From Eutreptiella sp. 'Long Island Sound 2002' (lineage: Eukaryota; Protista; Euglenida): 64,000 nt of DNA. The notes under the pieces were generated by a model. It saw only the letters and a list, made by a program, of their open reading frames with translations, ran no database searches and was not told the DNA's origin. Each line of letters starts with the position of its first letter. The stretch's first letter is position 1. The stretch covers positions 187,550,001 through 187,614,000 of the forward strand of contig OZ038378.1 of the NCBI GenBank assembly GCA_964036045.1. The letters are read 5' to 3'. A program made the translations under genes and the position numbers. This document shows positions 23,701-47,150 of the stretch, in pieces.

Positions 23701-26700
23701 CAGCTCCGATATTTTGCCAAACTCCCCCCCCCCCCTTGCGCAAGCACCGCCTTGTCTAAGCACCAGGACCCGGTCTGACCGTCACTTTTACCGAATTTTC
23801 TGACCACGGCTTTTACGGGCAGAAAGTAGGCAAAGCGTGATTGTGTGCCGATTGTAGATGGAAAGAGGTGCTGTTTCATGCTTGTGATGAGGCCTCCTGC
23901 TCATAGCAACATTGTGCTCGTTACTGCACCCCACTGCTCTTTGTTTTGGTGTGATTTTCAGCCATGACTACTGTCGGTACCCCTGGCTTGGCTGGTTGGT
24001 GCTTGTGCAAGGGGGGGGGGGGGGGGGTATTGGAAGAGGCAAGCACAAAGTGTACTGCAATCCAAGTTGTCATCAAACCGGAGGCAAATACATCCATGCC
24101 CACATGGTGGCTTTTTTATCTCATATGAGAGGTCCCCGCTTCTGAAAGCGACTTTCGGCGAACTGGCTGCAACGATATGGCTAACGAACAGCAGTTGCTG
24201 GTCAAAATACATTTTCTTGACTTAATTGCGTGATTGAATCCGGCAATTTATTGTTATATGCGTTGTGTTGGGCAGGGGGCAGGACATTGGGCTCGCAGGA
24301 AGTGCGGCGCGTGGCACATACATCCCTCCGGGCGTCGCCGGAAGCGCACGCCCTCTTTGACGACATTGCAGACTGTCCTTCGTCCAATGCACAAATTGGA
24401 GTTGTTGCAAAGTGTGCATGCAAGGTTTGCATAGTTGGGCTACCTGCATCACATGTGCTGTTGATATGGCTGTTGTTCAGATATGGCAGCACACTGTGGC
24501 AGAAGTACATTGAACGGCATGAGGTGTCGCCTGAGGTCCTGGAAGTCGTCGTGGACAACACATACTTCGACAAGCAATCCACAGGGCTGCCGTACGTTGG
24601 CACATTGTACTCAGCGGCAATGGCTCATTCAGAAGCCATGAGAGCGAACCCGATGGGATACACGGAAAGGTTTCTTTTGCCAAAATTGAACAGGTATTGG
24701 ATCTCTGAGTGAGGGCATGGAGACGCAGATTGGGACCGCAACCCAGACCTGTGCCTGAATGGGAGAAATTGGTGGCGCGTCTCAAGACCCAATCTAGTCG
24801 CTGGAAAAGTGGTTGAGGGCAAATTGTGGCGGTTACAAAACGGTTGGACGGCGCCTGGAAGGCGCTTCAGAGAGCTGTGCGCATGCTGTGCGCACATTTC
24901 GTATCGCACTGCACCATAGAACCATACTTCATGGTATTTGGGGGCTATGGGATTGCCGCTTCACCAAAACGGCGGTGCGTTCAACATCAGTGGCCTCCTT
25001 TCCAAATTTTGGCACTTTGCGCCTACAACACGCTGACAGTGTCCACAATTAGCAGACCGCGTCTACTTGGGGTAGAGACTACAGACCTCAACTCCTATGG
25101 TCCATCGGTAAACAGGAGGGGTGCACAGGTGAATAGAGTGGCGTGCGGTGTAAAATGTGCTTATTCTTGCATATTATATATTAGGGGCCTTCGGCCCCAC
25201 ATGGGGCACTGCGCACCCACCCTTGGGGGGGCCGAATGTGCAAAAGTGCCCAGTGCCCCGGGCACCACCCAACTGCGAGTGGGACAACCCGACAGCCACA
25301 ATGGGATGCAGGGAGCGACATGCTACCCCCCCCGGCGCCGCACACCAGAAGCAGTGAGCATGCCAGCAGAAAAAGAAAGAGCCCGAAACTGGGAGGAACA
25401 CAAGCAGCACAACAACTGGGCACAGGGCCGCCCCACACACGGCAGTGAGATGAGCCCCAACAGGACACACAACAAGACACAAGGGAACCATGAGGTGCGA
25501 GCACTGCAGCAACCACCAAATGCGGCGCACGCAGAGCGAGCCATCAGCAAACACCCTCCCTCCCTCTACAAGGTGCCCACGTACTCCACAAGGGCGGGGG
25601 CTGCGCCCCGCGCACCGGGAGGTGCCCGCCACGGGGGTGGCAACAGGGCCGTGAACAGCCAACCGCGCATGGGACAGTCCACGTCGTACGGAGATGTGAA
25701 ATCCTCGTACGGGGGGGGGGGGCAGGCAGGGGGGACAGGAGGGGGTGCGCGACATGGGCACCCAGGAGCGCCACCAGACAGGGGGAGGAGCAACACAGAC
25801 ACACAGAACGCGGGAGCCACACCAAGAGGGACAAGGGCGAGCACAGCAGACAGGAGGAGGGGCACAGCAAGGCAGGAGAGGCAACCAGAACAGCGGGAAC
25901 AGGGAACCAGAATGGAGCGGATGGTGGAGCGTGCACATGGGAGGCAGCAACAATAAAGGGGATGGCTTGGCCAGCCAGCCCCATCGCTACCGGGTGCCAG
26001 GGCAACCCCTGCTCAACCGGCATCAGGTGGGGGGTGTCTCCCGCAGCCCAGATGGGCTGTTTGCGCAACAGGAGCGGGAGCCCATCAGGGGCAGACCAGC
26101 CGTTAGGGGGAAAAGGACATATGGTGGACGGCCCGGACAGCGCGTGGAGGAACAGGGCACCTGGGCCTCACAGAAACACAGCAAGGCAGGCTATGGACGG
26201 CCTGTGGACAGAGGTGTATGGACAGCAAAAACAGTCAAACGACCCCGGCAACAACCAGCACATCCTCAATACGCCAATTATTGGGCGCCGCTGACGCGCA
26301 AACGGCACACCATGCCACATTCAGCACAGCCCCAACACACCAACTACTGGGCTCCGCGAATGCGGAAACGACACCAGCAAGAGCACCGGCCGCAGCGGCC
26401 GACAGAAAGCAGCGACCTGATGCAACATGCGAAGGGAAGAACGGGTGACCGTCCAGGGCCCCGTAAACACGGGGGGGCGGCCGGGCCCGGTCCTTGTATG
26501 CGACACCCCCCAGCCCCCCCGGTTTTGAAAGATAGTGGTGCCGGGTCGGCCACCAACAAGTGTCCCTAGAGAAAACTGTCCGGCGCCGAAGGCACCAATT
26601 TTTTTGTCATACTATGTGTTTATACTCAAAATACTCAAAATTTTGTACAGAATTCATATTTGTGTTAAAACAACAAGAAAAAATTTTGACATGAAGGAGG

Positions 26701-27829
26701 GCTACAGGAGGGCTACAGACCCTGGCAGCAACCCTAGCCCTAACCCTTGCCCTATGCCCTAACAGTAGCCCTAACCCTAGCCCTAACCCTAGCCCTAACC
26801 CTAATCAAGACTGAATATTGGGACCGAGCTGGTGGGGGAGGGAACATTAGATATGAATGGTGAGGGACATCAAGAATGATTCACACATTGATGGCTCTTG
26901 ACAAAGTGAAATGCACCTGAACCCCATCACCACGAGGCCCACTTTCAAGGCTTTTTGGACTTCTCAGGGGCCAAAATGCCCCAAAATGGGCTCAAAATGG
27001 GCTCATTTCACCCTTTTGTGCACCCCAAATGGTCTACGATGAGTTTTGGAAAAATGTGTTTTTGACCCATTTTTGACCCATTTTTGGTCCCAAAACAGCC
27101 CATTTTCAAGGCATTTTGGGATTTTTGGGAGGACCCAAATGGGCCACCACAAGCTCAAAACAGTCCAAAAACACTTGTTTTAGCGTCGCACATGGTCTAG
27201 GATCATTTTTGCGGAAAGTCATATTTTTACCCCTTTCGGACCCTGTTGACCCATTTGGGTACCCACCTGTTTGGGCTTGAGCTTGCAGCTTGCCGCAGCC
27301 TAGTGGGCCTAGGTATTGGGGTGTAGGCGTCCGTTTGGGCAAATCTGAGGGGTGGAAACCACAAAACGTGGGGGGTTGCGGGTGGAGTAGGTGCCCTCGG
27401 AATCGCATTTTGAGCCATGTAGCCAAAGATATGGCCTATTCTTGGTTTGTGGCTGTCGGCATTTGGAGCTTTTGGGGGCCTTTTTGGGCCGCTTCCGCGG
27501 CATATCATGGAGTTAGAGGGCCGCAAAGAGCTCGTTGACACGGGGAAGTCAAGCGGCACGTGGAGTGTACCCACCGTTTCCCTTCGTTTGGCCGTTTTGA
27601 ATGTGTTCCAAGGCTTTTTTGGCCCAAAAATGGCTGTTTTTGGCCCTAAACTGCAGTTTTTGAAACTGAGGTCCGCCACTTGCGGATCCCGTTCCCGGCC
27701 GCCACCGTTGAGTTTCTTGCTCAAACTTTGTGTGATTGTACTTCACACCCATAGGTATCATCCACCAAAATTTCACCCGAATCTGAAGCACCACGACGGA
27801 GTTGTGATTTTTAGCCATTTCGCGCGTGC

Positions 27830-27864
<35 letters not shown>

Positions 27865-30026
27865 GCTGCTAAACCTGGTAGGTCCACCCTAGACACTAAA
27901 AAGGGTTATAAAACCAAGACTGGTTCCACCAGCTCGGTGACCCTAACCCTAATCAAGACTGAATATTGGGACCGAGCTGGTGGGGGAGGGAACATCAGCT
28001 ATGACTGGTGAGGGACATCGAGAATGATTCACACATTGGGGGAATCTTTGCACTGCGCGCGCACTGCGCGCTACTTTTAGACTATGTTCCCCCGGAAGAG
28101 CCCCCAAGCACACCCCTTGGAAACGCCCTTAGAATTAGGTGACCCAAACTGCCCCAGCTCAAGAAAGATGCAAACCACCTTCCCTGAACATAACACACAT
28201 CATGCACATCTGGAAAGGCCATGCACAGCGCATTGGTCGCCACCCTCAAGAACACACAACTGTCTTTCTGGTCCATTGTCAACTAAGTACACATTGAGAA
28301 TACGCAACTTGTGTGCACAACATGACACAGTTGCAGAATCAAAGAAATGTCACACTGTCACATGTGTGCGTGTCTATGCAATCCGTACAATATTGCAATT
28401 CACACTTGTCACACATGGACATCTTTTCAGGGTCAAACTTGGTGCAACAAAGGGCACAAACATCCCCATCATCACCCACAACATCCTCATCATCATTGTC
28501 CTCCTGTGTAGGTGCGGTCCATACATGTGCAGGTACGTGTTCCCACGGACCATATGGAGGGTACCGTACCTGTCTTCGAATCAAAAATTGCTGCAAATGC
28601 AAGAGTACACGCACGTACTCATGCAACTCCGTACCGGATCCCCTCCATATGCTACGTCATCCCTGCATTCTCGGGGGTCCCCAAAAGAAGGGGAACAAAA
28701 TCAGAAGTCAAAACCTACGCTAGGGGTCACCATGATGCCCCTAGGGGCCCCTAGTATCACAAAGTATGGGTCTCTAGTACGGCCAGACGCCCAAATAGTT
28801 GCACTGCACACGCACTGCGCTTAAGGCTCCCCCATTGATGGCTCTTGACAAAGTGAAATCACCTTGCAAGTGAACCCCATCACCACGAGGCCCACTTTCA
28901 AGGCTTTTTGGACTTCTCAGGGGCCAAAATGCCCCAAAATGGGCTCCAAATGGGCTCATTTCACCTGTTTGTGCACCCCAAATGGTCTACGATGAGTTTT
29001 GGAAAAATGTGTTTTTGACCCATTTCTGACCCATTTTTGGTCCCAAAACAGCCCATTTTCAAGGCATTTTGGGATTTTCGGAGGACCAAAATGAGCCACC
29101 ACAAGCTTAAAACGGTCCAAAAACACTTGTTTTAGCGTCGCACGTGGTCTAGGATCATTTTTGAGAAAAATCATCTTTTTGCCCCTACTGGATGGACCCT
29201 GTTGACCCATTTGGGCACCCACCTGTTTGGAGCTTGCAGCTTGCCGCAGCCTAGTGGGCCTAGGTATTGGGGTGTAGGCGTCCGTTGGGGCAATTCAGAA
29301 GGGTGGAAACCACAAAAAGTGGGGGGTTGTGGGTGGAGTAGGTGCCCTCGGAATCGCATTTTGAGCCATGTAGCCAAAGATATGGCCTATTCTTGGTTTG
29401 TGGCTGTCGGCATTTGGAGTTTCCGGGGGCCTTTTTGGGCCGTTTCCGGGACATATCATGGAGTTAGAGGGCCGCAAAGAGCTCGTTGACACAGGGAAGT
29501 CAAGCCGCACGTGGAGTGTACCCACCGTTTCCCTTCGTTTGGCCGTTTTGAATGTGTTCCAAGGCTTTTTTGGCCCAAAAATGGCTGTTTTTGGCCCTAA
29601 ACTGCAGTTTTTGAAACTGAGGTCCGCCACTTGCGGATCCCGTTCCCGGCCGCCACCGTTGAGTTTCTTGCTCAAACTTTGTGTGATTGTACTTCACACC
29701 CATAGGTATCATCCACCAAAATTTCACCCGAATGTGAAGCACCACGACGGAGTTGTGATTTTTAGCCATTTCGCGCGTGCTGCTTGCTGCTTGCTGCTTG
29801 CTGCTGCTGCTGCTGCTGCTGCTAAACCTGGTAGGTCCACCCTAGACACTAAAAAGGGTTATAAAACCAAGACTGGTTCCACCAGCTCGGTGACCCTAAC
29901 CCTAACCCCCCCCCCTTCACCCCTGGCTGGACGCCCCCCCTGACCCCGGCCAGACCCCCCCCCCGACCCCCGGCAGGAACCCCCCCCCCGACCCCCGGCT
30001 GGACCCCCCCCCCCCCCCCCCCCCCA

Positions 30027-30057
<31 letters not shown>

Positions 30058-33000
30058 AACTGCCCCCCCCCCCCCACAAGTTTTGACAGATAGCTGGGGG
30101 GTATGTCGCATCAGGACCGGTTGTAGTCGCCCCCCGTGCCCGTAAAGGAGCAACAACCAGACGGAATGTCACACAGGGGGGGCGAGTTCGTATATGCTGG
30201 AGGGATATATGTTGGGCTACCCATACCCCCCCCCTCAACATCACCTCTGAGGCATATGAACCTTTTTGGAACAGCAGAGGTCCTGAAAGTGTTCTCAAAG
30301 CCCCCCTTTCCCCTCCTTCCCCCCACCTCTCCTCCAGGATGATGGAAATGGAGGAACCAGAGGAGCCAGAGGAGCTCTGGGACAGCGAGGCAGAAGGGGC
30401 AGGTGGTGATGGGTCGCCGGACAGTGACAGTGATGACGCGGACAGTGACGAGGAGCACTTGCTCAAATGGAGGAGCTAATTGAGGGCAGCATAGTGAGTA
30501 AATGCATCCAGCAGTGCGTGTGTTTTCAGTTCGTCATTGCAAAGAGTTGCCTAGTTTGCAGTTGTGTTCCAATGAGTTGCTGAAAGCAGGCCTGTTCACC
30601 ACGTCCAATCACTGGCTGTGGTGTCGCTGGTGCTTCGGTGCATGGTGATTGATTCATTGCTCCCCTCCACAAATGAATTGCCCCCCGACCCATGACCCAT
30701 GGGAAAGGGCCGATAGACCCCGAGGTGGAGGATTCGAACCTGAGGTTTGACACCGGTACTTGGAAACACGCCTCGTCGTGCACGTGTTGGCGAATGGTCC
30801 TTGGAGATCGGATGCATTCCCAGAAACTCCCACCACGAGGGGGCGGATGGCGATGAGACGAGAGCGTTCCTGCTCCTCCCTCACCCGAAACGAGTGGTGC
30901 ATGCCCAGTCGTGCAGTGTAATGTGGCAGACGCCGGCAGGTCTGATGGCTTTTTCTGCAGTTATCTTCTCGAGAACAACCAAGACCCTGTTGCACCGAAG
31001 ACATACGTTGAGTACATTACAAAGTGCATCTCCTGCAATTATCTGCCTCGATTGGACGTGCAATGGACACCCGAAAGGTGCGTGAAAAGAGCTGTGCACC
31101 TGTAGACCCCCACGTCGGGAGGCATCGACCACAGTGAGGCTGGCACTAGTGGGGGACAGTGTTAAGACGGCAAAAAGGGCCCGGGGCTAAGGTGTACTGG
31201 AAACAAGTCGCCACTACAGGACGGACATCGCCGCGGTGTCAATACATGTCACAAAAGCACTGCGATGTGAGTACAGCTGTGATGGGCCACAAGAGCGCAG
31301 TTGATCATTGATGGGCAGGTCACGCGAATGACAGGCACGGGACACCGAACGTCCTACACCGTACCTATCCAGCCTTCATGGAGCTGGAGCCCCAAGTCTC
31401 CCCCAGGGGCCGACACATCAGGCCTTGAATGAAAAAATCAAATTTGTCACTGCAGAAAGCTTTTTTTGGGGCCATATTTGGGACATGATTTCTTGCTTCT
31501 GGATCTCAGAGCCCCCACCCCACGCCTCTGCCCCTCCACCAGGTCTGCCCAGCCTCATTGGCAGTACCGTGCAAATTCTAAAGATTTGCGAAAATAATTA
31601 ATTCCTGGCACAAGGTGTTGTTGTCCGCAAAAAAAAGAAACGCAAAAAAAATTAATTATTGGATTCATGCCTTACGCAAAAATGGGTTCCGCGAAAAAAA
31701 TCGCAAAAATAAAATAATTTTTGCCCCTGCCCCCCTTTTTGCAAGAATGCCAGAATTGCGCTCCAGAAAATGGGAGTGCTGCCAGGGCATGCGAACCTGC
31801 TATTGCAGCGTGCTCGCAAACCCTCTGATGCGCAGCCAGCCCCAAAGCAACCGAAGGCCAGTTCTGCCCCGAAGCCTGCCCCAAAGGCAGTGGGATTTTT
31901 CGCGGGGAGGAGTGTTTTGTACACTTGTGGCAACGGGGCAACGGTTCGGGCCAAGGCGGTGAAAAATCATGGGAATGGCAAATATGATATCCAGTTCCAA
32001 CAGGATGGCAATGATGTGGTCCGCCTTTCTGTGCCTAGGGCCAAATTGCGAATTGCATAGGTGACCTTTTGTGTGTTCATCGTATTTCTCTTTCACAGCC
32101 GTGTACAGTGCTGTGGTTTTCTTGTTGTCTGATCCTGCAGACTTTTCTGTGGCATATTTTCAGCATTTCATGCACAAAAGGAATCAACCCCAATCCCCAA
32201 AATGCAAAAAAAAACCGCAAAAAATTTTTAATTTTTGGTCCAACACCCTACGCAAGAATAGGTTCCGCGGAAAAAAAAATCGCAAAAAAAAGATTTTTTT
32301 GCCGATTTTTGCCCATTTTGGATGCTGCCGCAAAATTTTTGCTTATTATTAATTCAAAACACCCAACCCAAAATTAGGATTCCGCGAAACTTTAGGATTC
32401 GCACGGTACTTACTCTGACCCAACCCTTCCGGCCCCCGCCCTCTCCCAACACCCTCCCCATGCCTCTCTTGAGCAGAACTACCAAGCCTCCATTAGACTC
32501 CTGAGGTGCAGCAGACCCTCTGGGACTCTGGCCCTAGTGCAGCCATGGCTACTGCTGTTCCGAGTCTGAGTGCGCCACATTGGAATCCCATGTCTGTTTC
32601 TTTGGGACTGCACCAGGGCGACAACAGGCCTTTTCACAAGCACAGACTGCCGCTTTCTGCAGCTAAGATCCCTCCCCGACTGTGTTCTGGCCACGGATGC
32701 ATACACCATTGACGGAATTGTTTTGGTGATTGCCCGGGTGGCAGGGGGTCGGAGCCCGATCACCAAATGCCGCGCCCCTGTTCGAGCATCCCTGCCTCTA
32801 CCCTTCCTTGTGTGCAGTACCCACCAGCCCGGTGTTCCGCTTGTGTGCAGGGGCTGGGGGCTGTTTGCCGCAGAGGAGTTGCTGCTGTTCGATTTCCTCG
32901 GGGTGTACACTGGACGGTTGCATTTCCTGGACGACATTCCTACGGAAGAGAGGCTGAAGAACGCGTACCTCTGCACCTTCCCTGCGAAGGAGAAAGGGTT

Positions 33001-33226
33001 GGTTGCCAACGCAGAGTCGCACGGGAACTACACCCGCTTCGTCAACCATGACGAGACGCACAACATTTTCTGTATTCACCTGAACATTAACAAAGTGCCG
33101 TATATGGCGCTGGTGTCATCTGGGTGCTCAGCTGGGGCAGAGATATTGTGGAACTACGGTCAGAATTACAACAAGAATTGGGAGGGGGTGGATGAGGCAG
33201 ATGGGATTGAGGAGGGCAGCGGTTGA
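20400..33226 (+). CDS. SET-domain protein lysine methyltransferase, join(20400-20711,22487-22572,24481-24693,30961-31077,32851-33226), 367 aa
   Basis: All four introns are GT-AG with matching phases (0,2,2,2). Spliced product reads ...LPRLDVQWTPER|GWGLFAAEELLLFDFLGVYTG...ANAESHGNYTRFVNH...EILWNYG, i.e. the SET GxG, RFxNH and ELxxxYG motifs; no post-SET cysteines. Confidence 0.85.
20469..20624 (+). repeat. 39-bp coding tandem repeat x4 (EKQQTE[C/G]EPSGTK)
   Basis: Alternating TGC/GGC variants give a 78-bp higher-order unit; in frame with exon 1. Confidence 0.9.
22487..22572 (+). CDS. SET gene exon 2
   Basis: TTGTTTTCCTTTTCAG|VSLPHVQKRLTINGKCRSLQEMMTTVNTK|GTATGT; phase 0 in, phase 2 out. Confidence 0.75.
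23724..24027 (+). mobile_element. Family D MITE, copy 1 (in SET intron 2)
   Basis: TIR CnTTGCGCAAGCACC / GGTGCTTGTGCAAGGn; homologous to 51459-51725; contains TTTTCAG|CCATG and a truncated ORF start at 23964. Confidence 0.85.
24481..24693 (+). CDS. SET gene exon 3
   Basis: TGTTGTTCAG|YGSTLWQKYIERHEVSPEV...FLLPKLN|GTATTG; 213 nt, phase 2/2. Confidence 0.8.
26735..26804 (+). repeat. Degenerate interstitial telomeric (CCCTAA/CCCTAG)n
   Basis: About 10 CCCTAA/CCCTAG units directly abutting the 1.14-kb element. Confidence 0.85.
26805..27940 (-). mobile_element. Telomere-repeat-inserted non-coding element, unit 1 (1136 bp)
   Basis: Flanked on both sides by CCCTAA; near-identical second unit follows after (CCCTAA)2; 13-bp asymmetric inverted repeat ACCGAGCTGGTGG (26823-35 / 27926-38). 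Strand is arbitrary (TTAGGG strand). Confidence 0.75.
28038..28833 (-). mobile_element. Family A element, copy 2
   Basis: ATT|GGGGG...CCCCC|ATT; the paralogous empty site CACACATTGATGGCTC at 26882-26897 has a single ATT. Confidence 0.92.
28339..28503 (-). pseudogene. PHD/zinc-finger-like exon carried by element A2
   Basis: CAG|EDNDDEDVVGDDGDVCALCCTKFDPEKMSMCDKCELQYCTDCIDTHTCDSVTFL*, with Cx2C..Cx2Cx4Cx2C..HxC spacing; upstream 66-nt GT-AG intron (28504-28569) and 21-nt mini-exon. Confidence 0.55.
29906..30076 (+). repeat. C-rich tract with ~31-bp GACCCCCCCCCGACCCCCGGC units and long C runs (G-quadruplex-prone on the minus strand)
   Basis: Direct reading; follows the last CCCTAA. Confidence 0.8.
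30338..30479 (+). CDS. Candidate alternative terminal exon (acidic) within SET intron 3
   Basis: 36-nt pyrimidine tract + CAG, phase 2 as in intron 3; MMEMEEPEEPEELWDSEAEG...DSDSDDADSDEEHLLKWRS*. Confidence 0.35.
30961..31077 (+). CDS. SET gene exon 4
   Basis: TTTTTCTGCAG|YLLENNQDPVAPKTYVEYITKCISCNYLPRLDVQWTPER|GTGCGT; 117 nt, phase 2/2; supplies the first SET beta-strand. Confidence 0.88.
31567..32406 (+). mobile_element. TA-flanked non-autonomous TIR element (Tc1/mariner/pogo-like) in SET intron 4
   Basis: TA|CCGTGC...GCACGG|TA; 27-bp TIR with 22/27 identity; ~105-bp A-rich internal direct repeats (31621-31730, 32200-32305). Confidence 0.88.
31770..32060 (+). CDS. 96-aa cargo ORF: Lys/Pro/Ala linker + Tudor/SH3-barrel-like domain
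   Basis: Intact ATG-to-stop; PAPKQPKASSAPKPAPK then FFAGRSVLYTCGNGATVRAKAVKNHGNGKYDIQFQQDG; pyrimidine tract and CAG 3 nt before the ATG. Confidence 0.5.
   Translation: MGVLPGHANLLLQRARKPSDAQPAPKQPKASSAPKPAPKAVGFFAGRSVLYTCGNGATVRAKAVKNHGNGKYDIQFQQDGNDVVRLSVPRAKLRIA
32851..33226 (+). CDS. SET gene exon 5 (catalytic core)
   Basis: TTGTGTGCAG|GWGLFAAEE...GNYTRFVNH...AGAEILWNYG...*. Confidence 0.92.
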
Positions 33227-36745: not shown

Positions 36746-38466
36746 ATTGAAGCGACCAGTGCATGCAAGGCTGAGGGCTGGGCCCTTAGCCAGGGCCAGG
36801 CGGATTGCTTCTACATCCGGGGGCTGAGGAGGACTAGGGGCGCACCAGAAGTGTCGCCCATTGGGTCTTTTTTGGGGGAGGGGGCGGGTTGATGTGGGGA
36901 GGGAGAGTCGGCCAGCGGAGACCATGTCCCAACTTTGCCGGTGGTATGTGCCCCAAAGGGTCCGGAGAATGGGAGCACTTTGCGAGGATCCTGACGCTGC
37001 ACGTCTGAGTTGAGGGTAAGGCCGGGGCAGAGAGGGTATTCTGGAGTGTCTGGTACCAGAAGGAGGTCTGTGAGTGTGAGGGTGAGGTGCGCCATGCTTT
37101 GGAGCACCACCTGCACTGATTGATGATCCTCTGGAGCGGGGGTCGTCGTTCTGCCGGGCCGGAGTACCATCCCGGAGGGAGAGCAACTCACCTCTGTAGT
37201 CACAAGGGGAGGCAGGGAGTGGGGGATTTTCTCTACTGTATTGTACGCGAGGGGTGGGGAAAGCACAGGACGTGTGCTGTGCATTGTTGGCTGCCTTTCT
37301 TGCTTGGCGGCTGAAACACTACCGCTGCTACCTCCCCGGGGGACCTACAATCTGTGGGAGGTGCCAGACGGTGCCCTGCTGACAATCTGTGGCGCAATTC
37401 CGCCGCGTTTATTGTTGGAGCACAATGCACAAGTATGCCAGAGTGACTCTGGAGGGTGGCCACCATCGTCAGTTTGCCAGTTGTCCATTGTCCATTGTCT
37501 CTTGTCAGTTGGCCAAGACACGGCTTGTTCAACATACAGAGGGCGCATGTATGGCACTAATTGGGCAGCAAATCACCTCGAAGAGAGGTTTTTGATTCGG
37601 TCCCGAGTCTCAAAGGTGAAGAAACGTGCTTGGGTTGCGTGTTTCAGCCGTTCGTTGGTTGCAGTCGTTGTATGTATGTGGTTCGGGCACCGTTCTTTTT
37701 GTTTGAGTCACAACACTATTATGTCCAGCATTTGACAACAGCACTTAACATTCTTTAATGCACCTGGTAGACGTGGTAGACAGGTGGTGAACACATGCAC
37801 AAATGGAACATGTACCCGCTCGCAACAAGCAGCCATCGGAGTGTGGTGATGCTTTTGTGGTCATTGAATGCATAACGAGAGCCCACCCCCCCCCCACCAG
37901 GGCTCCTTTAACAACTCAGAATGTGGGGTGGGGTGCGCCCCCCCCCCCCCCCTGGACCGCCCCCCTCCTCTTTCAAAGGTTTGGCCAAATTTTCTTCCGG
38001 GCCTTCGGCCGATCAAAAATTTTCTCTGGCGCCAATTCGCCTAAACCAAAAATTTTCTTCGGCGACTTTGGCGCCTCTTAAAATTCAGCAGCACTGGTTG
38101 GGGGCGGGGGGGGGCGGGGCTGGACCCTCCCCTTAAGGAGCACTCCCCCCCCCCTCCATACCCCGCAATGCCATCATACAGTGACCACACGCTTCCTACC
38201 ACCGCGTTTGTGACAGATGTTGTCATGCTTCCTCTTGGATCGTACTGCAGCGAAACTGAGGTACCCCGTAGTTGACCGCATTCAGGCACGTCACACAAGG
38301 TCCTGATAGTCAAGCACGGCTGCTCTGCCCCCACGTGCCCTGCGCGGATTGCACGTACACCGCGCCGGTCGCAACCCCCAGTACCTCCACCGCCGTTGAA
38401 GACCAACAAACACGTGGCGTCTGTGCACTGCCTGCGACTGGCCGAGGTCGATCTGACCATAGCGCT

Positions 38467-39162
38467 ATGATCCCCCCCGAGGCCCTTGAGGATGGAGACA
38501 TCATGAACCCCGTTGCACTGTCTACGCTCTGCTCTGTTCCCTTTGAAGAGCCTGCGGATGACGCAGACATCCGGTTTGACAATGCCGTGGCCCTACTGGA
38601 GAAGCTTGTGCACGATGAGGGCTTCGAGGCCCGCCAGCAGGCCTTTTTCCTGGAGCACTGCGAGGAGTTCACGGACGAGGAGGAGAACAAGCTCATCTAC
38701 ACCGACATTTTCAATCGGTACACCGCGCAAATCGAGGACCTGGTTCTCCTCCGGCTCACCATCGAAATCCCCGGCTTCGATTTGGAAGAGTTCATGGAGC
38801 TGCTGGAGGAACGGCACACGGAGGTCAGTGGGGAAGCGCTCGATATCCTTGCGAGCTGCACGGACTTTGAGGCGTTTAAGCAGACGATGCTGGCCGTCAG
38901 GCAGCAGGAGGATCAGCTGGATGACCGTCTGGAGCAGGCGCTGTCTCGGTTTTTCGCCGCGGATGACGCAGGGATCGACGACGACGATCTGGACGTGAGG
39001 AGCGTTGATGATGAGGACGTGGCGGCTTCTGAGACTCGTGCTGCAGACGATGAGGGCGGCCCTTCCACGCCTCTCATTACGCCGTCACCCCCCCCTAAGC
39101 CTCGCAATTCCATCGTGGGTACTCGCAACCTGCGGCGCATCGTGGCGGAGGCAAATAAATGA
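38467..39162 (+). CDS. ARL2BP: ARL2-binding protein / BART-domain protein (ARL2BP/CFAP36-like), intronless, 231 aa
   Basis: FFLEHCEEFTDEEENKLIYTDIFNRY...FDLEEFMELL...LDILASCTDFEAFKQTM matches the BART domain pattern; strong GC3 bias; CATAG|CGCT|ATG. Confidence 0.85.
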   Translation: MIPPEALEDGDIMNPVALSTLCSVPFEEPADDADIRFDNAVALLEKLVHDEGFEARQQAFFLEHCEEFTDEEENKLIYTDIFNRYTAQIEDLVLLRLTIEIPGFDLEEFMELLEERHTEVSGEALDILASCTDFEAFKQTMLAVRQQEDQLDDRLEQALSRFFAADDAGIDDDDLDVRSVDDEDVAASETRAADDEGGPSTPLITPSPPPKPRNSIVGTRNLRRIVAEANK

Positions 39163-45716: not shown

Positions 45717-47150
45717 ATGCCCCGCGTCATCCCCGGGCGATTGGAGACAACCCACGGGTCACGGCGCGCCGCCTCCAAGGCCGTCTTCATCCTCGCGGCG
45801 CTGCTGCCCGTCGGAGGCCACTATGCCAAGCACTTGGTGGGGCCTCTGAAGCCCTTCTTCATGAAGGACCATTCCTTTGGGTTGTCGAACACGCAGTTCG
45901 GCGCGCTGCTCTTCGCCTCCGACTCGGCCCTGTTCTTCGCCCCGTTGCTCTCCGGAATGGTCGTGGACTCCATCGGCGCCTTCTTGGCAGCCACCGTGTT
46001 CTGTTTCCTGTCGCTATTTGGGCACGTGTTCTTTTGTGTGGGGGTCGTCAAGCACAGCCTCTGGAACAGCATCGTCGGAAGGGGCGTCTACGGCATCGGG
46101 GAGAGTGCCGTGAGCATCGCGCAGGCGGGCATCATCTGCCATACCTTCAGCCGCGCCGACCTGACGATCGCGCTCGGGATCGGAGAGAGCGTGCGGGCCT
46201 CTGTGAATTGGCTCGGGAAGGTCCTGCCGGTCACGCTGGCCGACCTGACGGGCAACTACAAGTGCGCGTTGTGGTTCGGGGTCCTCCTACTCCTGGTCTC
46301 GCAGATCATTTCCCTCGCGATCTTCATCATGGCCACGCGCCCCCACGAGAGCGGGGCCGGCACGCGCGACGCCGGCGCGGCGTCCCCGAGAGCGCGACGG
46401 CGCGTCCTCCGGGACTTTCCGCTGGAGTTCTGGGTGTTGACGGGCATCCACGCGCTGATGAACAACGTCCACAACGTCTTCAGCGGCATCTCAACCGACT
46501 ACCTCTCGAAGCGGAACTCGCTGTCGGTGGAGACGGCGGCCCTGCTCAGCAGCCTCGAGAACGTGGGCCCCATTTTCTTCTGCTCTTGGGTCAGTTGGCA
46601 CGTGAGTCGGTACGGGGGCCGGCTGTACTGGATGCTCTTCGCCTGCGCATGCTCCGTGTGGGGCTTTGCGCTGCTGGTGCTTCAGCCCACGGTCCCGGTG
46701 GCGCTTTGCATGGTCCTGCTTTCGTTCAATACCATCATTCTGCCCACGTTGCTGCGCTCGTCGGTGCCGCTGCTGCTGCACCCGGACATGTACGGGCTGG
46801 GGTTCGGCCTCTACACGGGGCTGACGGGACTGGGGGGGAACGTCAATATTTTGGTGGGCTGGCTCAAGGATGTGAGTGGCAGCTACGAGGGCGGGCTGTA
46901 CCTGCTGACGGGGATGTCGCTGCTGGGCGTCGTCCTGTGTGGGTGGGTCCATTACCTGGATGCGTCGCGTTTGGGGTGTCTGAACCTGGCGGAGGAGCAG
47001 CTGAGGGGGCACGAGGAGGAGACTGCACGTCTGATCCCGGGGACGGAGGATCAGCTGGTGATCGACGTGCCTCAGTCGCCGACCGGGCGGCGCAGTAGCT
47101 GCGGTGCGGGTGATACAGAGTCCGAAGTGGGACGGGCAGGGAAGTGTTAG
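45717..47150 (+). CDS. MFSD1: Major facilitator superfamily transporter, MFSD1-like, intronless, 477 aa
   Basis: About 12 hydrophobic segments; FAPLLSGMVVDSIG and GRGVYGIGESAVSIAQ resemble MFSD1 GGFLIDR / GRFVFGIGGESLAVAQ; strong GC3 bias; TTTGTTCAG|GG|ATG. Confidence 0.85.
   Translation: MPRVIPGRLETTHGSRRAASKAVFILAALLPVGGHYAKHLVGPLKPFFMKDHSFGLSNTQFGALLFASDSALFFAPLLSGMVVDSIGAFLAATVFCFLSLFGHVFFCVGVVKHSLWNSIVGRGVYGIGESAVSIAQAGIICHTFSRADLTIALGIGESVRASVNWLGKVLPVTLADLTGNYKCALWFGVLLLLVSQIISLAIFIMATRPHESGAGTRDAGAASPRARRRVLRDFPLEFWVLTGIHALMNNVHNVFSGISTDYLSKRNSLSVETAALLSSLENVGPIFFCSWVSWHVSRYGGRLYWMLFACACSVWGFALLVLQPTVPVALCMVLLSFNTIILPTLLRSSVPLLLHPDMYGLGFGLYTGLTGLGGNVNILVGWLKDVSGSYEGGLYLLTGMSLLGVVLCGWVHYLDASRLGCLNLAEEQLRGHEEETARLIPGTEDQLVIDVPQSPTGRRSSCGAGDTESEVGRAGKC

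Follow-up and report, generated by a model that had tools for sequence, protein, structure and literature searches.

A non-coding mobile element that homes to telomere-type hexamers in Eutreptiella, probably a Helitron2-like rolling-circle transposon

What are the two long non-coding units that lie head to tail among telomere-type hexamers in the genome of the euglenid Eutreptiella sp. 'Long Island Sound 2002', and how did they come to be there? The stretch that raises the question (hereafter the window) comprises 64,000 nucleotides, positions 187,550,001 to 187,614,000 of contig OZ038378.1 (assembly GCA_964036045.1), and positions below are counted from its first letter. A degenerate telomere-like tract of about 12 CCCTAA/CCCTAG hexamers on the plus strand (26732-26804; Tandem Repeats Finder, TRF, gives 11.8 copies with 74–83% match) is followed by unit 1, of 1136 bp (26805-27940), two CCCTAA hexamers between both insertions (CCCTAACCCTAA, 27941-27952, plus strand), unit 2 (27953-29893) and again two CCCTAA hexamers (CCCTAACCCTAA, 29894-29905, plus strand). 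Both units are placed on the minus strand, the TTAGGG orientation being their presumed top strand. A previous reading made from the sequence alone (the sequence-only reading) had described this layout, and the sequence together with TRF bears it out. It had proposed a non-autonomous element that targets telomere repeats, similar to the TATE elements of Leishmania. As shown below, the first part of this proposal is upheld by the rest of the genome, while the units are probably relatives of Helitron2.

We searched the 2.28-Gb assembly, in which the window lies on contig 1. Unit 1 gave 4,809 first-look candidates, and all the 40 that were scored were full length with 97–98% identity, i.e., the copies are young and count in thousands. 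The exact first 25 nt of the plus strand occur 6,633 times in the genome, with CTAA directly before in 5,994 cases (90.4%), and the exact last 24 nt occur 7,899 times, with CCC directly after in 6,699 (84.8%). The chance expectation for a fixed 4-mer beside the ends is about 0.4%, and the association between ends and hexamer is far above it. At the local scale, the copies found in 30 loci all read CCCTAA|TCAAGACTG... at one side and ...CTCGGTGA|CCCTAA-like at the other, and the orientation relative to the hexamers was the same in 36 of 36 non-redundant copies, whose outer flanks belonged to at least six unrelated contexts. On the TTAGGG strand each of the two units is preceded by GGG and TTA comes next after it, as the sequence-only reading had noted for this locus, and the local copies and most of the genome-wide copies of the ends keep this register. 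The insertion site can be written either GGG^TTA or GGGT^TAGGG, the shared T leaving an ambiguity of 1 nt.

The hexamers of the window belong to a small terminal inverted repeat (TIR) transposon and not to a telomere, because the tract sits within such a transposon, flanked by its own 8-bp duplication, and the copies of the unit are dispersed along the chromosome. One copy of this transposon (host C) spans 26468-30138 and would measure about 580 bp if the units were taken out, with the native telomere-like tract inside. The left arm (26468-26731, plus strand) has a TIR that begins CACGGGGGGGCG and is homologous to loci L003, L008 and L021 from about 26469; it gave 1,621 first-look candidates genome-wide, of which the 40 scored had 94–100% identity. 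The right arm (29906-30138, plus strand) comes after the two last hexamers, which are the rest of the host tract, and consists of C-rich tandem repeats of 24–32 nt (29905-30075, by TRF) and a TIR ending CGCCCCCCGTG. Directly outside both inverted ends the same octamer, CCCGTAAA, is found (26460-26467 and 30139-30146, plus strand), which is the target-site duplication of the transposon. The term 'telomeric hexamers' used in the sequence-only reading does not hold for this tract. Along the chromosomes the density of copies was about 3–4 per Mb; on contig 1 none was seen in the first 0.59 Mb and the first copies appeared at 0.59–0.72 Mb.

A second host family (A, about 800 bp, with related TIRs) carries a similar telomere-like tract, and in this case the tracts also exist unfilled. 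A gapped pattern across the tract detected 142 exact copies, which share hexamer alleles such as CCTAA-CCCTAA-CCCTAG-CCCTAA-CCCTAG with the filled loci L006, L012, L019, L025 and L028 minus the unit. As the unfilled alleles equal the filled ones minus the unit, insertion takes place without duplication and without loss of target sequence. The flanks of other copies had been put forward in the sequence-only reading as the place where its proposal could fail, and they keep the same CCCTAA register; the alternative that it had set against itself, hexamers forming an integral part of an ordinary repeat, is contradicted by the 142 unfilled sites and by the lack of a target duplication. These data support the view of the unit as mobile and non-autonomous, homing to telomere-type hexamers with fixed position and direction.

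The origin of the head-to-tail arrangement can be approached by comparing neighbouring copies. Unit 2 is 1941 bp long because an unrelated TIR element of 796 bp is nested inside it (28038-28833; ends GGGGGAATCTTTGCACTGCG.../...GCTTAAGGCTCCCCC; 3–4 bp duplication ATT(G)), and measures 1145 bp without it. Unit 1 and unit 2 (minus the nested element) are 96.2% identical, while unit 1 has a median identity of 98.2%, and up to 98.8%, with copies on other chromosomes; the median of unit 2 with other copies was 94.9%. Neighbours in nine other arrays were 92.7–95.3% alike. Since neighbours are less alike than distant copies, arrays grow by new insertions into hexamers beside older copies. Judging from these identities, the locus in the window is the product of two separate insertions, with the older unit 2 arriving first, the nested element later, and the younger unit 1 then inserting beside unit 2. 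The nested element encodes an ORF (open reading frame) of 246 aa that starts with ATG (28084-28824) and had no Pfam match.

Arrays and spacers also bear on the idea that the units are an immobile composite satellite or segmental repeat, with the hexamers as an integral part and recombination as the only means of spread. Some arrays are clearly higher-order repeats with an exact period, specifically 2267 bp (a two-unit higher-order repeat), 1161 bp (at least 9 copies) and 1188 bp (12 copies); the long ones are at G000:C5:11.309-11.317 Mb, C1:22.174-22.183 Mb and C7:33.006-33.020 Mb. Besides single insertions, such exact periods point to unequal crossing-over or to multimers that have transposed. 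As an explanation of the whole family, however, the satellite is extremely improbable. There are thousands of dispersed single copies in unrelated contexts, the spacers between neighbouring units of an array vary among 6, 12 and 18 bp, neighbours resemble each other less than distant copies do, and the unfilled paralogous sites refute it.

The 5' end of unit 1 has a 13-nt asymmetric inverted repeat, ACCGAGCTGGTGG on the minus strand (27926-27938), which is separated from the terminus by 2 nt and can form a hairpin with the next 12 nt; its partner, CCACCAGCTCGGT on the minus strand, lies 18 nt from the 3' end (26823-26835), where the plus strand reads ACCGAGCTGGTGG. An 8-nt direct repeat, CAAGACTG, is found at 26806-26813 and 27915-27922. 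All these repeats are where the sequence-only reading had put them. Read on the G-rich strand, the ends are 5'-TC(ACCGAGCTGGTGG)AAC CAGTCTTG G...(CCACCAGCTCGGT)CCCAATATT CAGTCTTG A-3' (inverted repeats in brackets). Of the two copies of the short direct repeat CAGTCTTG, one is at the 3' terminus and the other is set back 18 nt from the 5' end. Directly after TTAGGG the 5' terminus reads TCACCGAGCTGGTGG, and the 3' end after CCACCAGCTCGGT is CCCAATATTCAGTCTTGA. The inverted-repeat pair was identical in 30 of the 36 local copies, and we found no informative compensatory changes between both repeats because the copies are too young. Among subfamilies whose interiors are only 45–90% alike, the first 60 nt are 97–100% conserved and some 35 subterminal nt at the 3' side are equally conserved, and the last 5–12 nt vary. 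A perfect 3' palindrome, first met in L029, was considered as a feature of the family and discarded, given that it is present genome-wide only in those two tandem copies.

The 5' hairpin that uses the 5' repeat has a folding energy of -9.6 to -11.3 kcal/mol (z -2.3), also in a copy from a metagenome described below. For the head-to-tail junction, a stem of 13 bp is predicted in which both repeats pair and enclose the joint (z -4.8 and -6.9). A further conserved subterminal hairpin is predicted at nt 32–54 of the 5' end (within 27866-27940, minus strand), where TAACCC pairs with TAGGGT. As for coding capacity, the claim of no ORF made in the sequence-only reading stands for the units, in which there is no conserved frame (the stop-free frames of 114–245 aa differ between copies and have no Pfam match), and fails for the nested element with its 246-aa frame. 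A search of the units against Rfam gave no match either. The long variant L004v, a candidate coding copy, turned out to be a unit broken by another TIR element.

Exact ends of this kind are relevant to a possible retroelement origin. Endonuclease-less Penelope-like elements and SART/TRAS-like long interspersed elements (LINEs) target telomere repeats and stack head to tail, and a passenger of either, inserted by target-primed reverse transcription, would account for the arrays in hexamers. We consider this very improbable, as both ends are exact in nearly all copies, with no series of 5' truncations, and there is no poly(A) or repeat tail owned by the element. Besides, the target duplication or microhomology expected for telomeric non-LTR (lacking long terminal repeats) and Penelope-like elements is not found.

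The ends resemble much more closely those of Helitron2. This group has been defined (Bao and Jurka, 2013; PMC3627910) by a 5' asymmetric inverted repeat of 8–15 nt located 0–2 nt from the 5' end, a 3' partner about 20–30 nt from the 3' end, a hairpin at the 5' side in which the 5' repeat takes part, a 3' hairpin downstream of the 3' repeat, a 5' T, and oriented insertion at T^T or T^C with no duplication of the target. On the G-rich strand the unit has a 13-nt repeat 2 nt from the 5' end and a perfect complement 18 nt from the 3' end; it also has the 5' hairpin, the 5' T, the single orientation and the scar-free insertion, and the spelling GGGT^TAGGG of its target is a T^T site as in Helitron2. 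Non-autonomous Helitron2 elements such as Helitron-1N1_CRe of Chlamydomonas have in common with the unit the asymmetric inverted repeats, the 5' hairpin, the 5' T, the strict orientation and the lack of target duplication, as well as a sequence-specific target (TTTT^T/C in Chlamydomonas) and short derivatives in high copy number that are 95–98% identical (PMC3627910). The unit differs in its telomeric-hexamer target, in having no convincing 3' hairpin and no Rep-helicase (RepHel) partner with matching ends among the Helitrons sampled, and in forming arrays by re-insertion into hexamers beside earlier copies.

The interior of the unit provides a second line of evidence. We have examined the Helitrons of the same genome by means of the Pfam Rep domain PF14214, which had 863 genomic candidates; the best 150 of the 863 were sorted into three groups. 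Groups 1 and 2 end in a hairpin followed by CTAG|T and begin with 5' TC, that is, they are canonical Helitron1, and those of group 2 are found in direct head-to-tail arrays. Group 3 encodes Rep, a PIF1 helicase, SAP and a DnaJ-like tail, with no AP endonuclease. Positions 211–1011 of the unit (G orientation) were colinear with the non-coding front of group 3 at 73–76% identity, in the same orientation as the group 3 Rep gene. The similarity includes a (GCAA)n microsatellite at the matching place, some 70 nt in from the 5' end. Neither the first 210 nt nor the last 125 nt of the unit matched group 3, so that sequence derived from a RepHel element covers about 800 nt of the interior while the termini differ. 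The comparison suggests that the unit looks like an internal-deletion derivative (the front 1 kb plus the last 125 nt) of a lineage that is sister to group 3. Such a lineage carrying the ends of the unit did not appear in the three groups sampled among the best 150 of the 863 Rep candidates.

With regard to the canonical Helitron1 elements, we also observed that in one family with an ORF of about 1,900 aa (L046:640-690, L048:6100-6190) the 3' hairpin and CTAG of one copy directly adjoin the 5' TC of the next. Clusters of this family, e.g., at G000:C11:29.17-29.24 Mb, are head to tail with a spacing of 12–22 kb. The sequence TTAGGGTTAGGG of L048 had been taken as a candidate junction and was discarded, being internal to a 3' region.

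Taking ends and interior together, we think it fairly probable that the unit is a non-autonomous rolling-circle (HUH/Rep) DNA transposon, most similar to Helitron2. We infer the class of the enzyme, the strand that moves and the chemistry of cleavage, as follows. A Rep-helicase acting in trans would nick the top strand, i.e., the G-rich strand, at both ends, and the perfect pairing of both asymmetric inverted repeats would mark the stop. The freed strand would then be joined into a TTAGGG repeat at GGG^TTA (or equally GGGT^TAGGG), in one direction and without target duplication. A circular intermediate would carry the joint ...CAGTCTTGA|TCACCGAG....

There is a precedent for Helitrons at telomere repeats. 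In the germline of Paramecium, telomere-repeat-specific Helitrons cap the chromosomes (PMC13085455). They have in common with the unit telomere repeats of one polarity at both sides, an insertion that appears to be strand specific and internal blocks of telomere repeats, but they are autonomous and located at chromosome ends, and the C-rich strand is their top strand (PMC13085455). The unit is non-coding and dispersed, mostly in short tracts borne by transposons. The chromosome-end location of the Paramecium type does not apply to it, nor does the C-rich top strand, provided that the Helitron2 orientation, with the G-rich strand on top, is the correct one. In the collection of papers searched, none dealt with Helitrons, or with elements that target telomere repeats, in Euglena.

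Several observations weigh against a Helitron2 assignment. The 3' terminal hairpin that belongs to the definition is negligible in the main family (-0.9 kcal/mol, z +0.24). Only the interior resembles group 3, and Helitrons take up foreign sequence. Moreover, the Helitrons of the genome do not provide a partner: groups 1 and 2 were discarded as mobilising elements because of their canonical Helitron1 ends, and group 3 was discarded as the direct partner because its termini, with a strong 3' hairpin (z -2.9) and a short asymmetric repeat ACTACACC / GGTGTACT, and its TA-rich target sites are different. No Rep-helicase element with the termini of the unit was present in the three sampled groups or in two pattern hunts for a longer parent. 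These used IUPAC 'not' patterns at the junction of the 5' block and the 3' block, i.e., the end of one block followed by non-unit sequence. The pattern from the 5' block had 217 matches, with only short variants and no parent among the 100 listed, and the mirror pattern from the 3' block had 0. The long copies with the same ends and an enzyme, which the sequence-only reading had suggested to look for, were hence not among the products of these hunts. Some of the filled host copies could also descend from one filled transposon and not from separate insertions. Finally, both the GGG^TTA site and the tandem clusters are also known from TATE, a tyrosine-recombinase retroelement of this phylum.

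About half of the 100 listed matches of the 5' block continue into CACCCCGTAATGC..., the others being small indel variants. This CACCCC repeat is the end of another repeat, 99% identical, with at least 335 candidate places, also outside units (examples at L008:3689-4145 and L017:3545-4143, the latter outside). In roughly 100 copies it adjoins the 5' block of the unit exactly at the 5'-block/3'-block junction. None of its places was near a Rep match and it had no similarity to group 3. It could be either a site-specific invader or a relic of a longer ancestor of the unit.

The coincidence with TATE requires consideration of a different enzyme, and the unit could be conceived as a non-autonomous derivative of a TATE/VIPER-like tyrosine-recombinase (YR) retrotransposon, SIRE-like, whose insertion at GGG^TTA would be due to site-specific recombination. 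The TATE of Leishmania braziliensis is a VIPER-like YR retrotransposon that forms tandem clusters at exactly GGG^TTA (PMC6681497), in agreement with what the sequence-only reading had stated about its fixed position in the hexamer and its clusters, and Euglena belongs to the same phylum. Position, clustering and euglenozoan host are thus shared with the unit. Split direct repeats of the type A1 ... B1 A2 B2 are found in VIPER and in at least one copy of TATE, and TATE encodes reverse transcriptase, RNase H and YR (RT/RH/YR; PMC6681497). The unit is non-coding and lacks such split repeats: only one direct repeat, of 8 nt, is present, and a B1/B2 pair is missing. The homology of its interior is with the front region of a Rep-helicase Helitron and not with RT/RH/YR sequence. 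The absence of target duplication would suit a recombinase, and in the head-to-tail junction the inverted repeats bracket the joint. However, the known core sites of tyrosine recombinases have a spacer of 6–8 nt, against 20 nt between the inverted repeats in the circle junction of the unit. Considering also that the ends suit the Helitron2 definition (PMC3627910), we regard a TATE/VIPER derivation as quite unlikely, and the kinship with TATE suggested by the sequence-only reading does not find support here.

A third type of enzyme could be another, possibly undescribed, single-strand (HUH) transposase, either a Replitron-like Y1 Rep or an IS200/IS605-like protein that reads the target through the 5' TAACCC/TAGGGT hairpin. 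Replitrons (Craig, 2023; PMC10288648) insert in one orientation and mostly without duplication, and have a terminal palindrome and, at the ends or close to them, short direct repeats; the unit is similar to them in its oriented, scar-free and sequence-specific insertion and in the presence of CAGTCTTG at or near both ends. The failure of the pattern hunts to find a RepHel partner would also be in line with such an enzyme, and so would the TAACCC at nt 32–37, within the predicted hairpin of the conserved 5' end. But the repeats of Replitrons are terminal and one copy of CAGTCTTG lies 18 nt inside the 5' end, while the asymmetric inverted repeats and the match of the interior to a RepHel element favour Helitron2. 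We take a passenger of another HUH transposase to be unlikely, a minor rival.

The TAACCC motif itself is the complement of the GGGTTA target. It was noticed post hoc, it is mutated in one subfamily copy, and its pairing with TAGGGT may be due to chance. We would give little credit to the possibility that the hairpin guides the transposase to the hexamer in the manner of IS200/IS605, or serves as a decoy for a telomere-repeat-binding domain or host protein. If one of these roles were true it would also explain why the unrelated TATE uses the same position.

Some other copies and neighbours complete the picture. In a copy of the unit at L013:311-1500 the 5' inverted repeat is missing together with the rest of the first 43 nt (G orientation), and 47 bp of the target stand at both sides as an exact direct duplication. 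This copy recalls the 'one-ended' Helitron2 insertions CRe-1/2/3 of Chlamydomonas, which are 5' truncated and flanked by duplications. In a scan of public metagenomes, one contig (L055, Ga0180434_10377456, 1101 bp) contained a unit of 91% identity, with three degenerate hexamers, TTATGG-TTAGGG-TTGGGG, and the 3' end of another unit in front of it. This match indicates that the family is also present in environmental (euglenid-like) DNA; no coding copy of the unit turned up in public metagenome contigs. Within the window, the nearest recognisable coding sequence to the units is a SET-domain ORF (32570-33226, plus strand, E 2.4e-8), and beyond it there are an ARL2-binding ORF (38272-39162) and an MFS ORF (45717-47150).

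The usual view of rolling-circle transposons is that a dinucleotide suffices as target. With around 8,000 young copies that read a 6-nt repeat in one register and direction, the unit represents a natural system to study how such an enzyme chooses its target, although it will be of limited practical use before the mobilising enzyme is known. The unit runs parallel to the telomere-capping Helitrons of Paramecium and to the unrelated TATE at the same GGG^TTA position. For annotation, it accounts for thousands of blocks of 'interstitial telomere repeat' in this genome. At the level of genome structure, small TIR transposons spread short interstitial telomere-like tracts here, and these serve as nests where elements of this kind accumulate head to tail.

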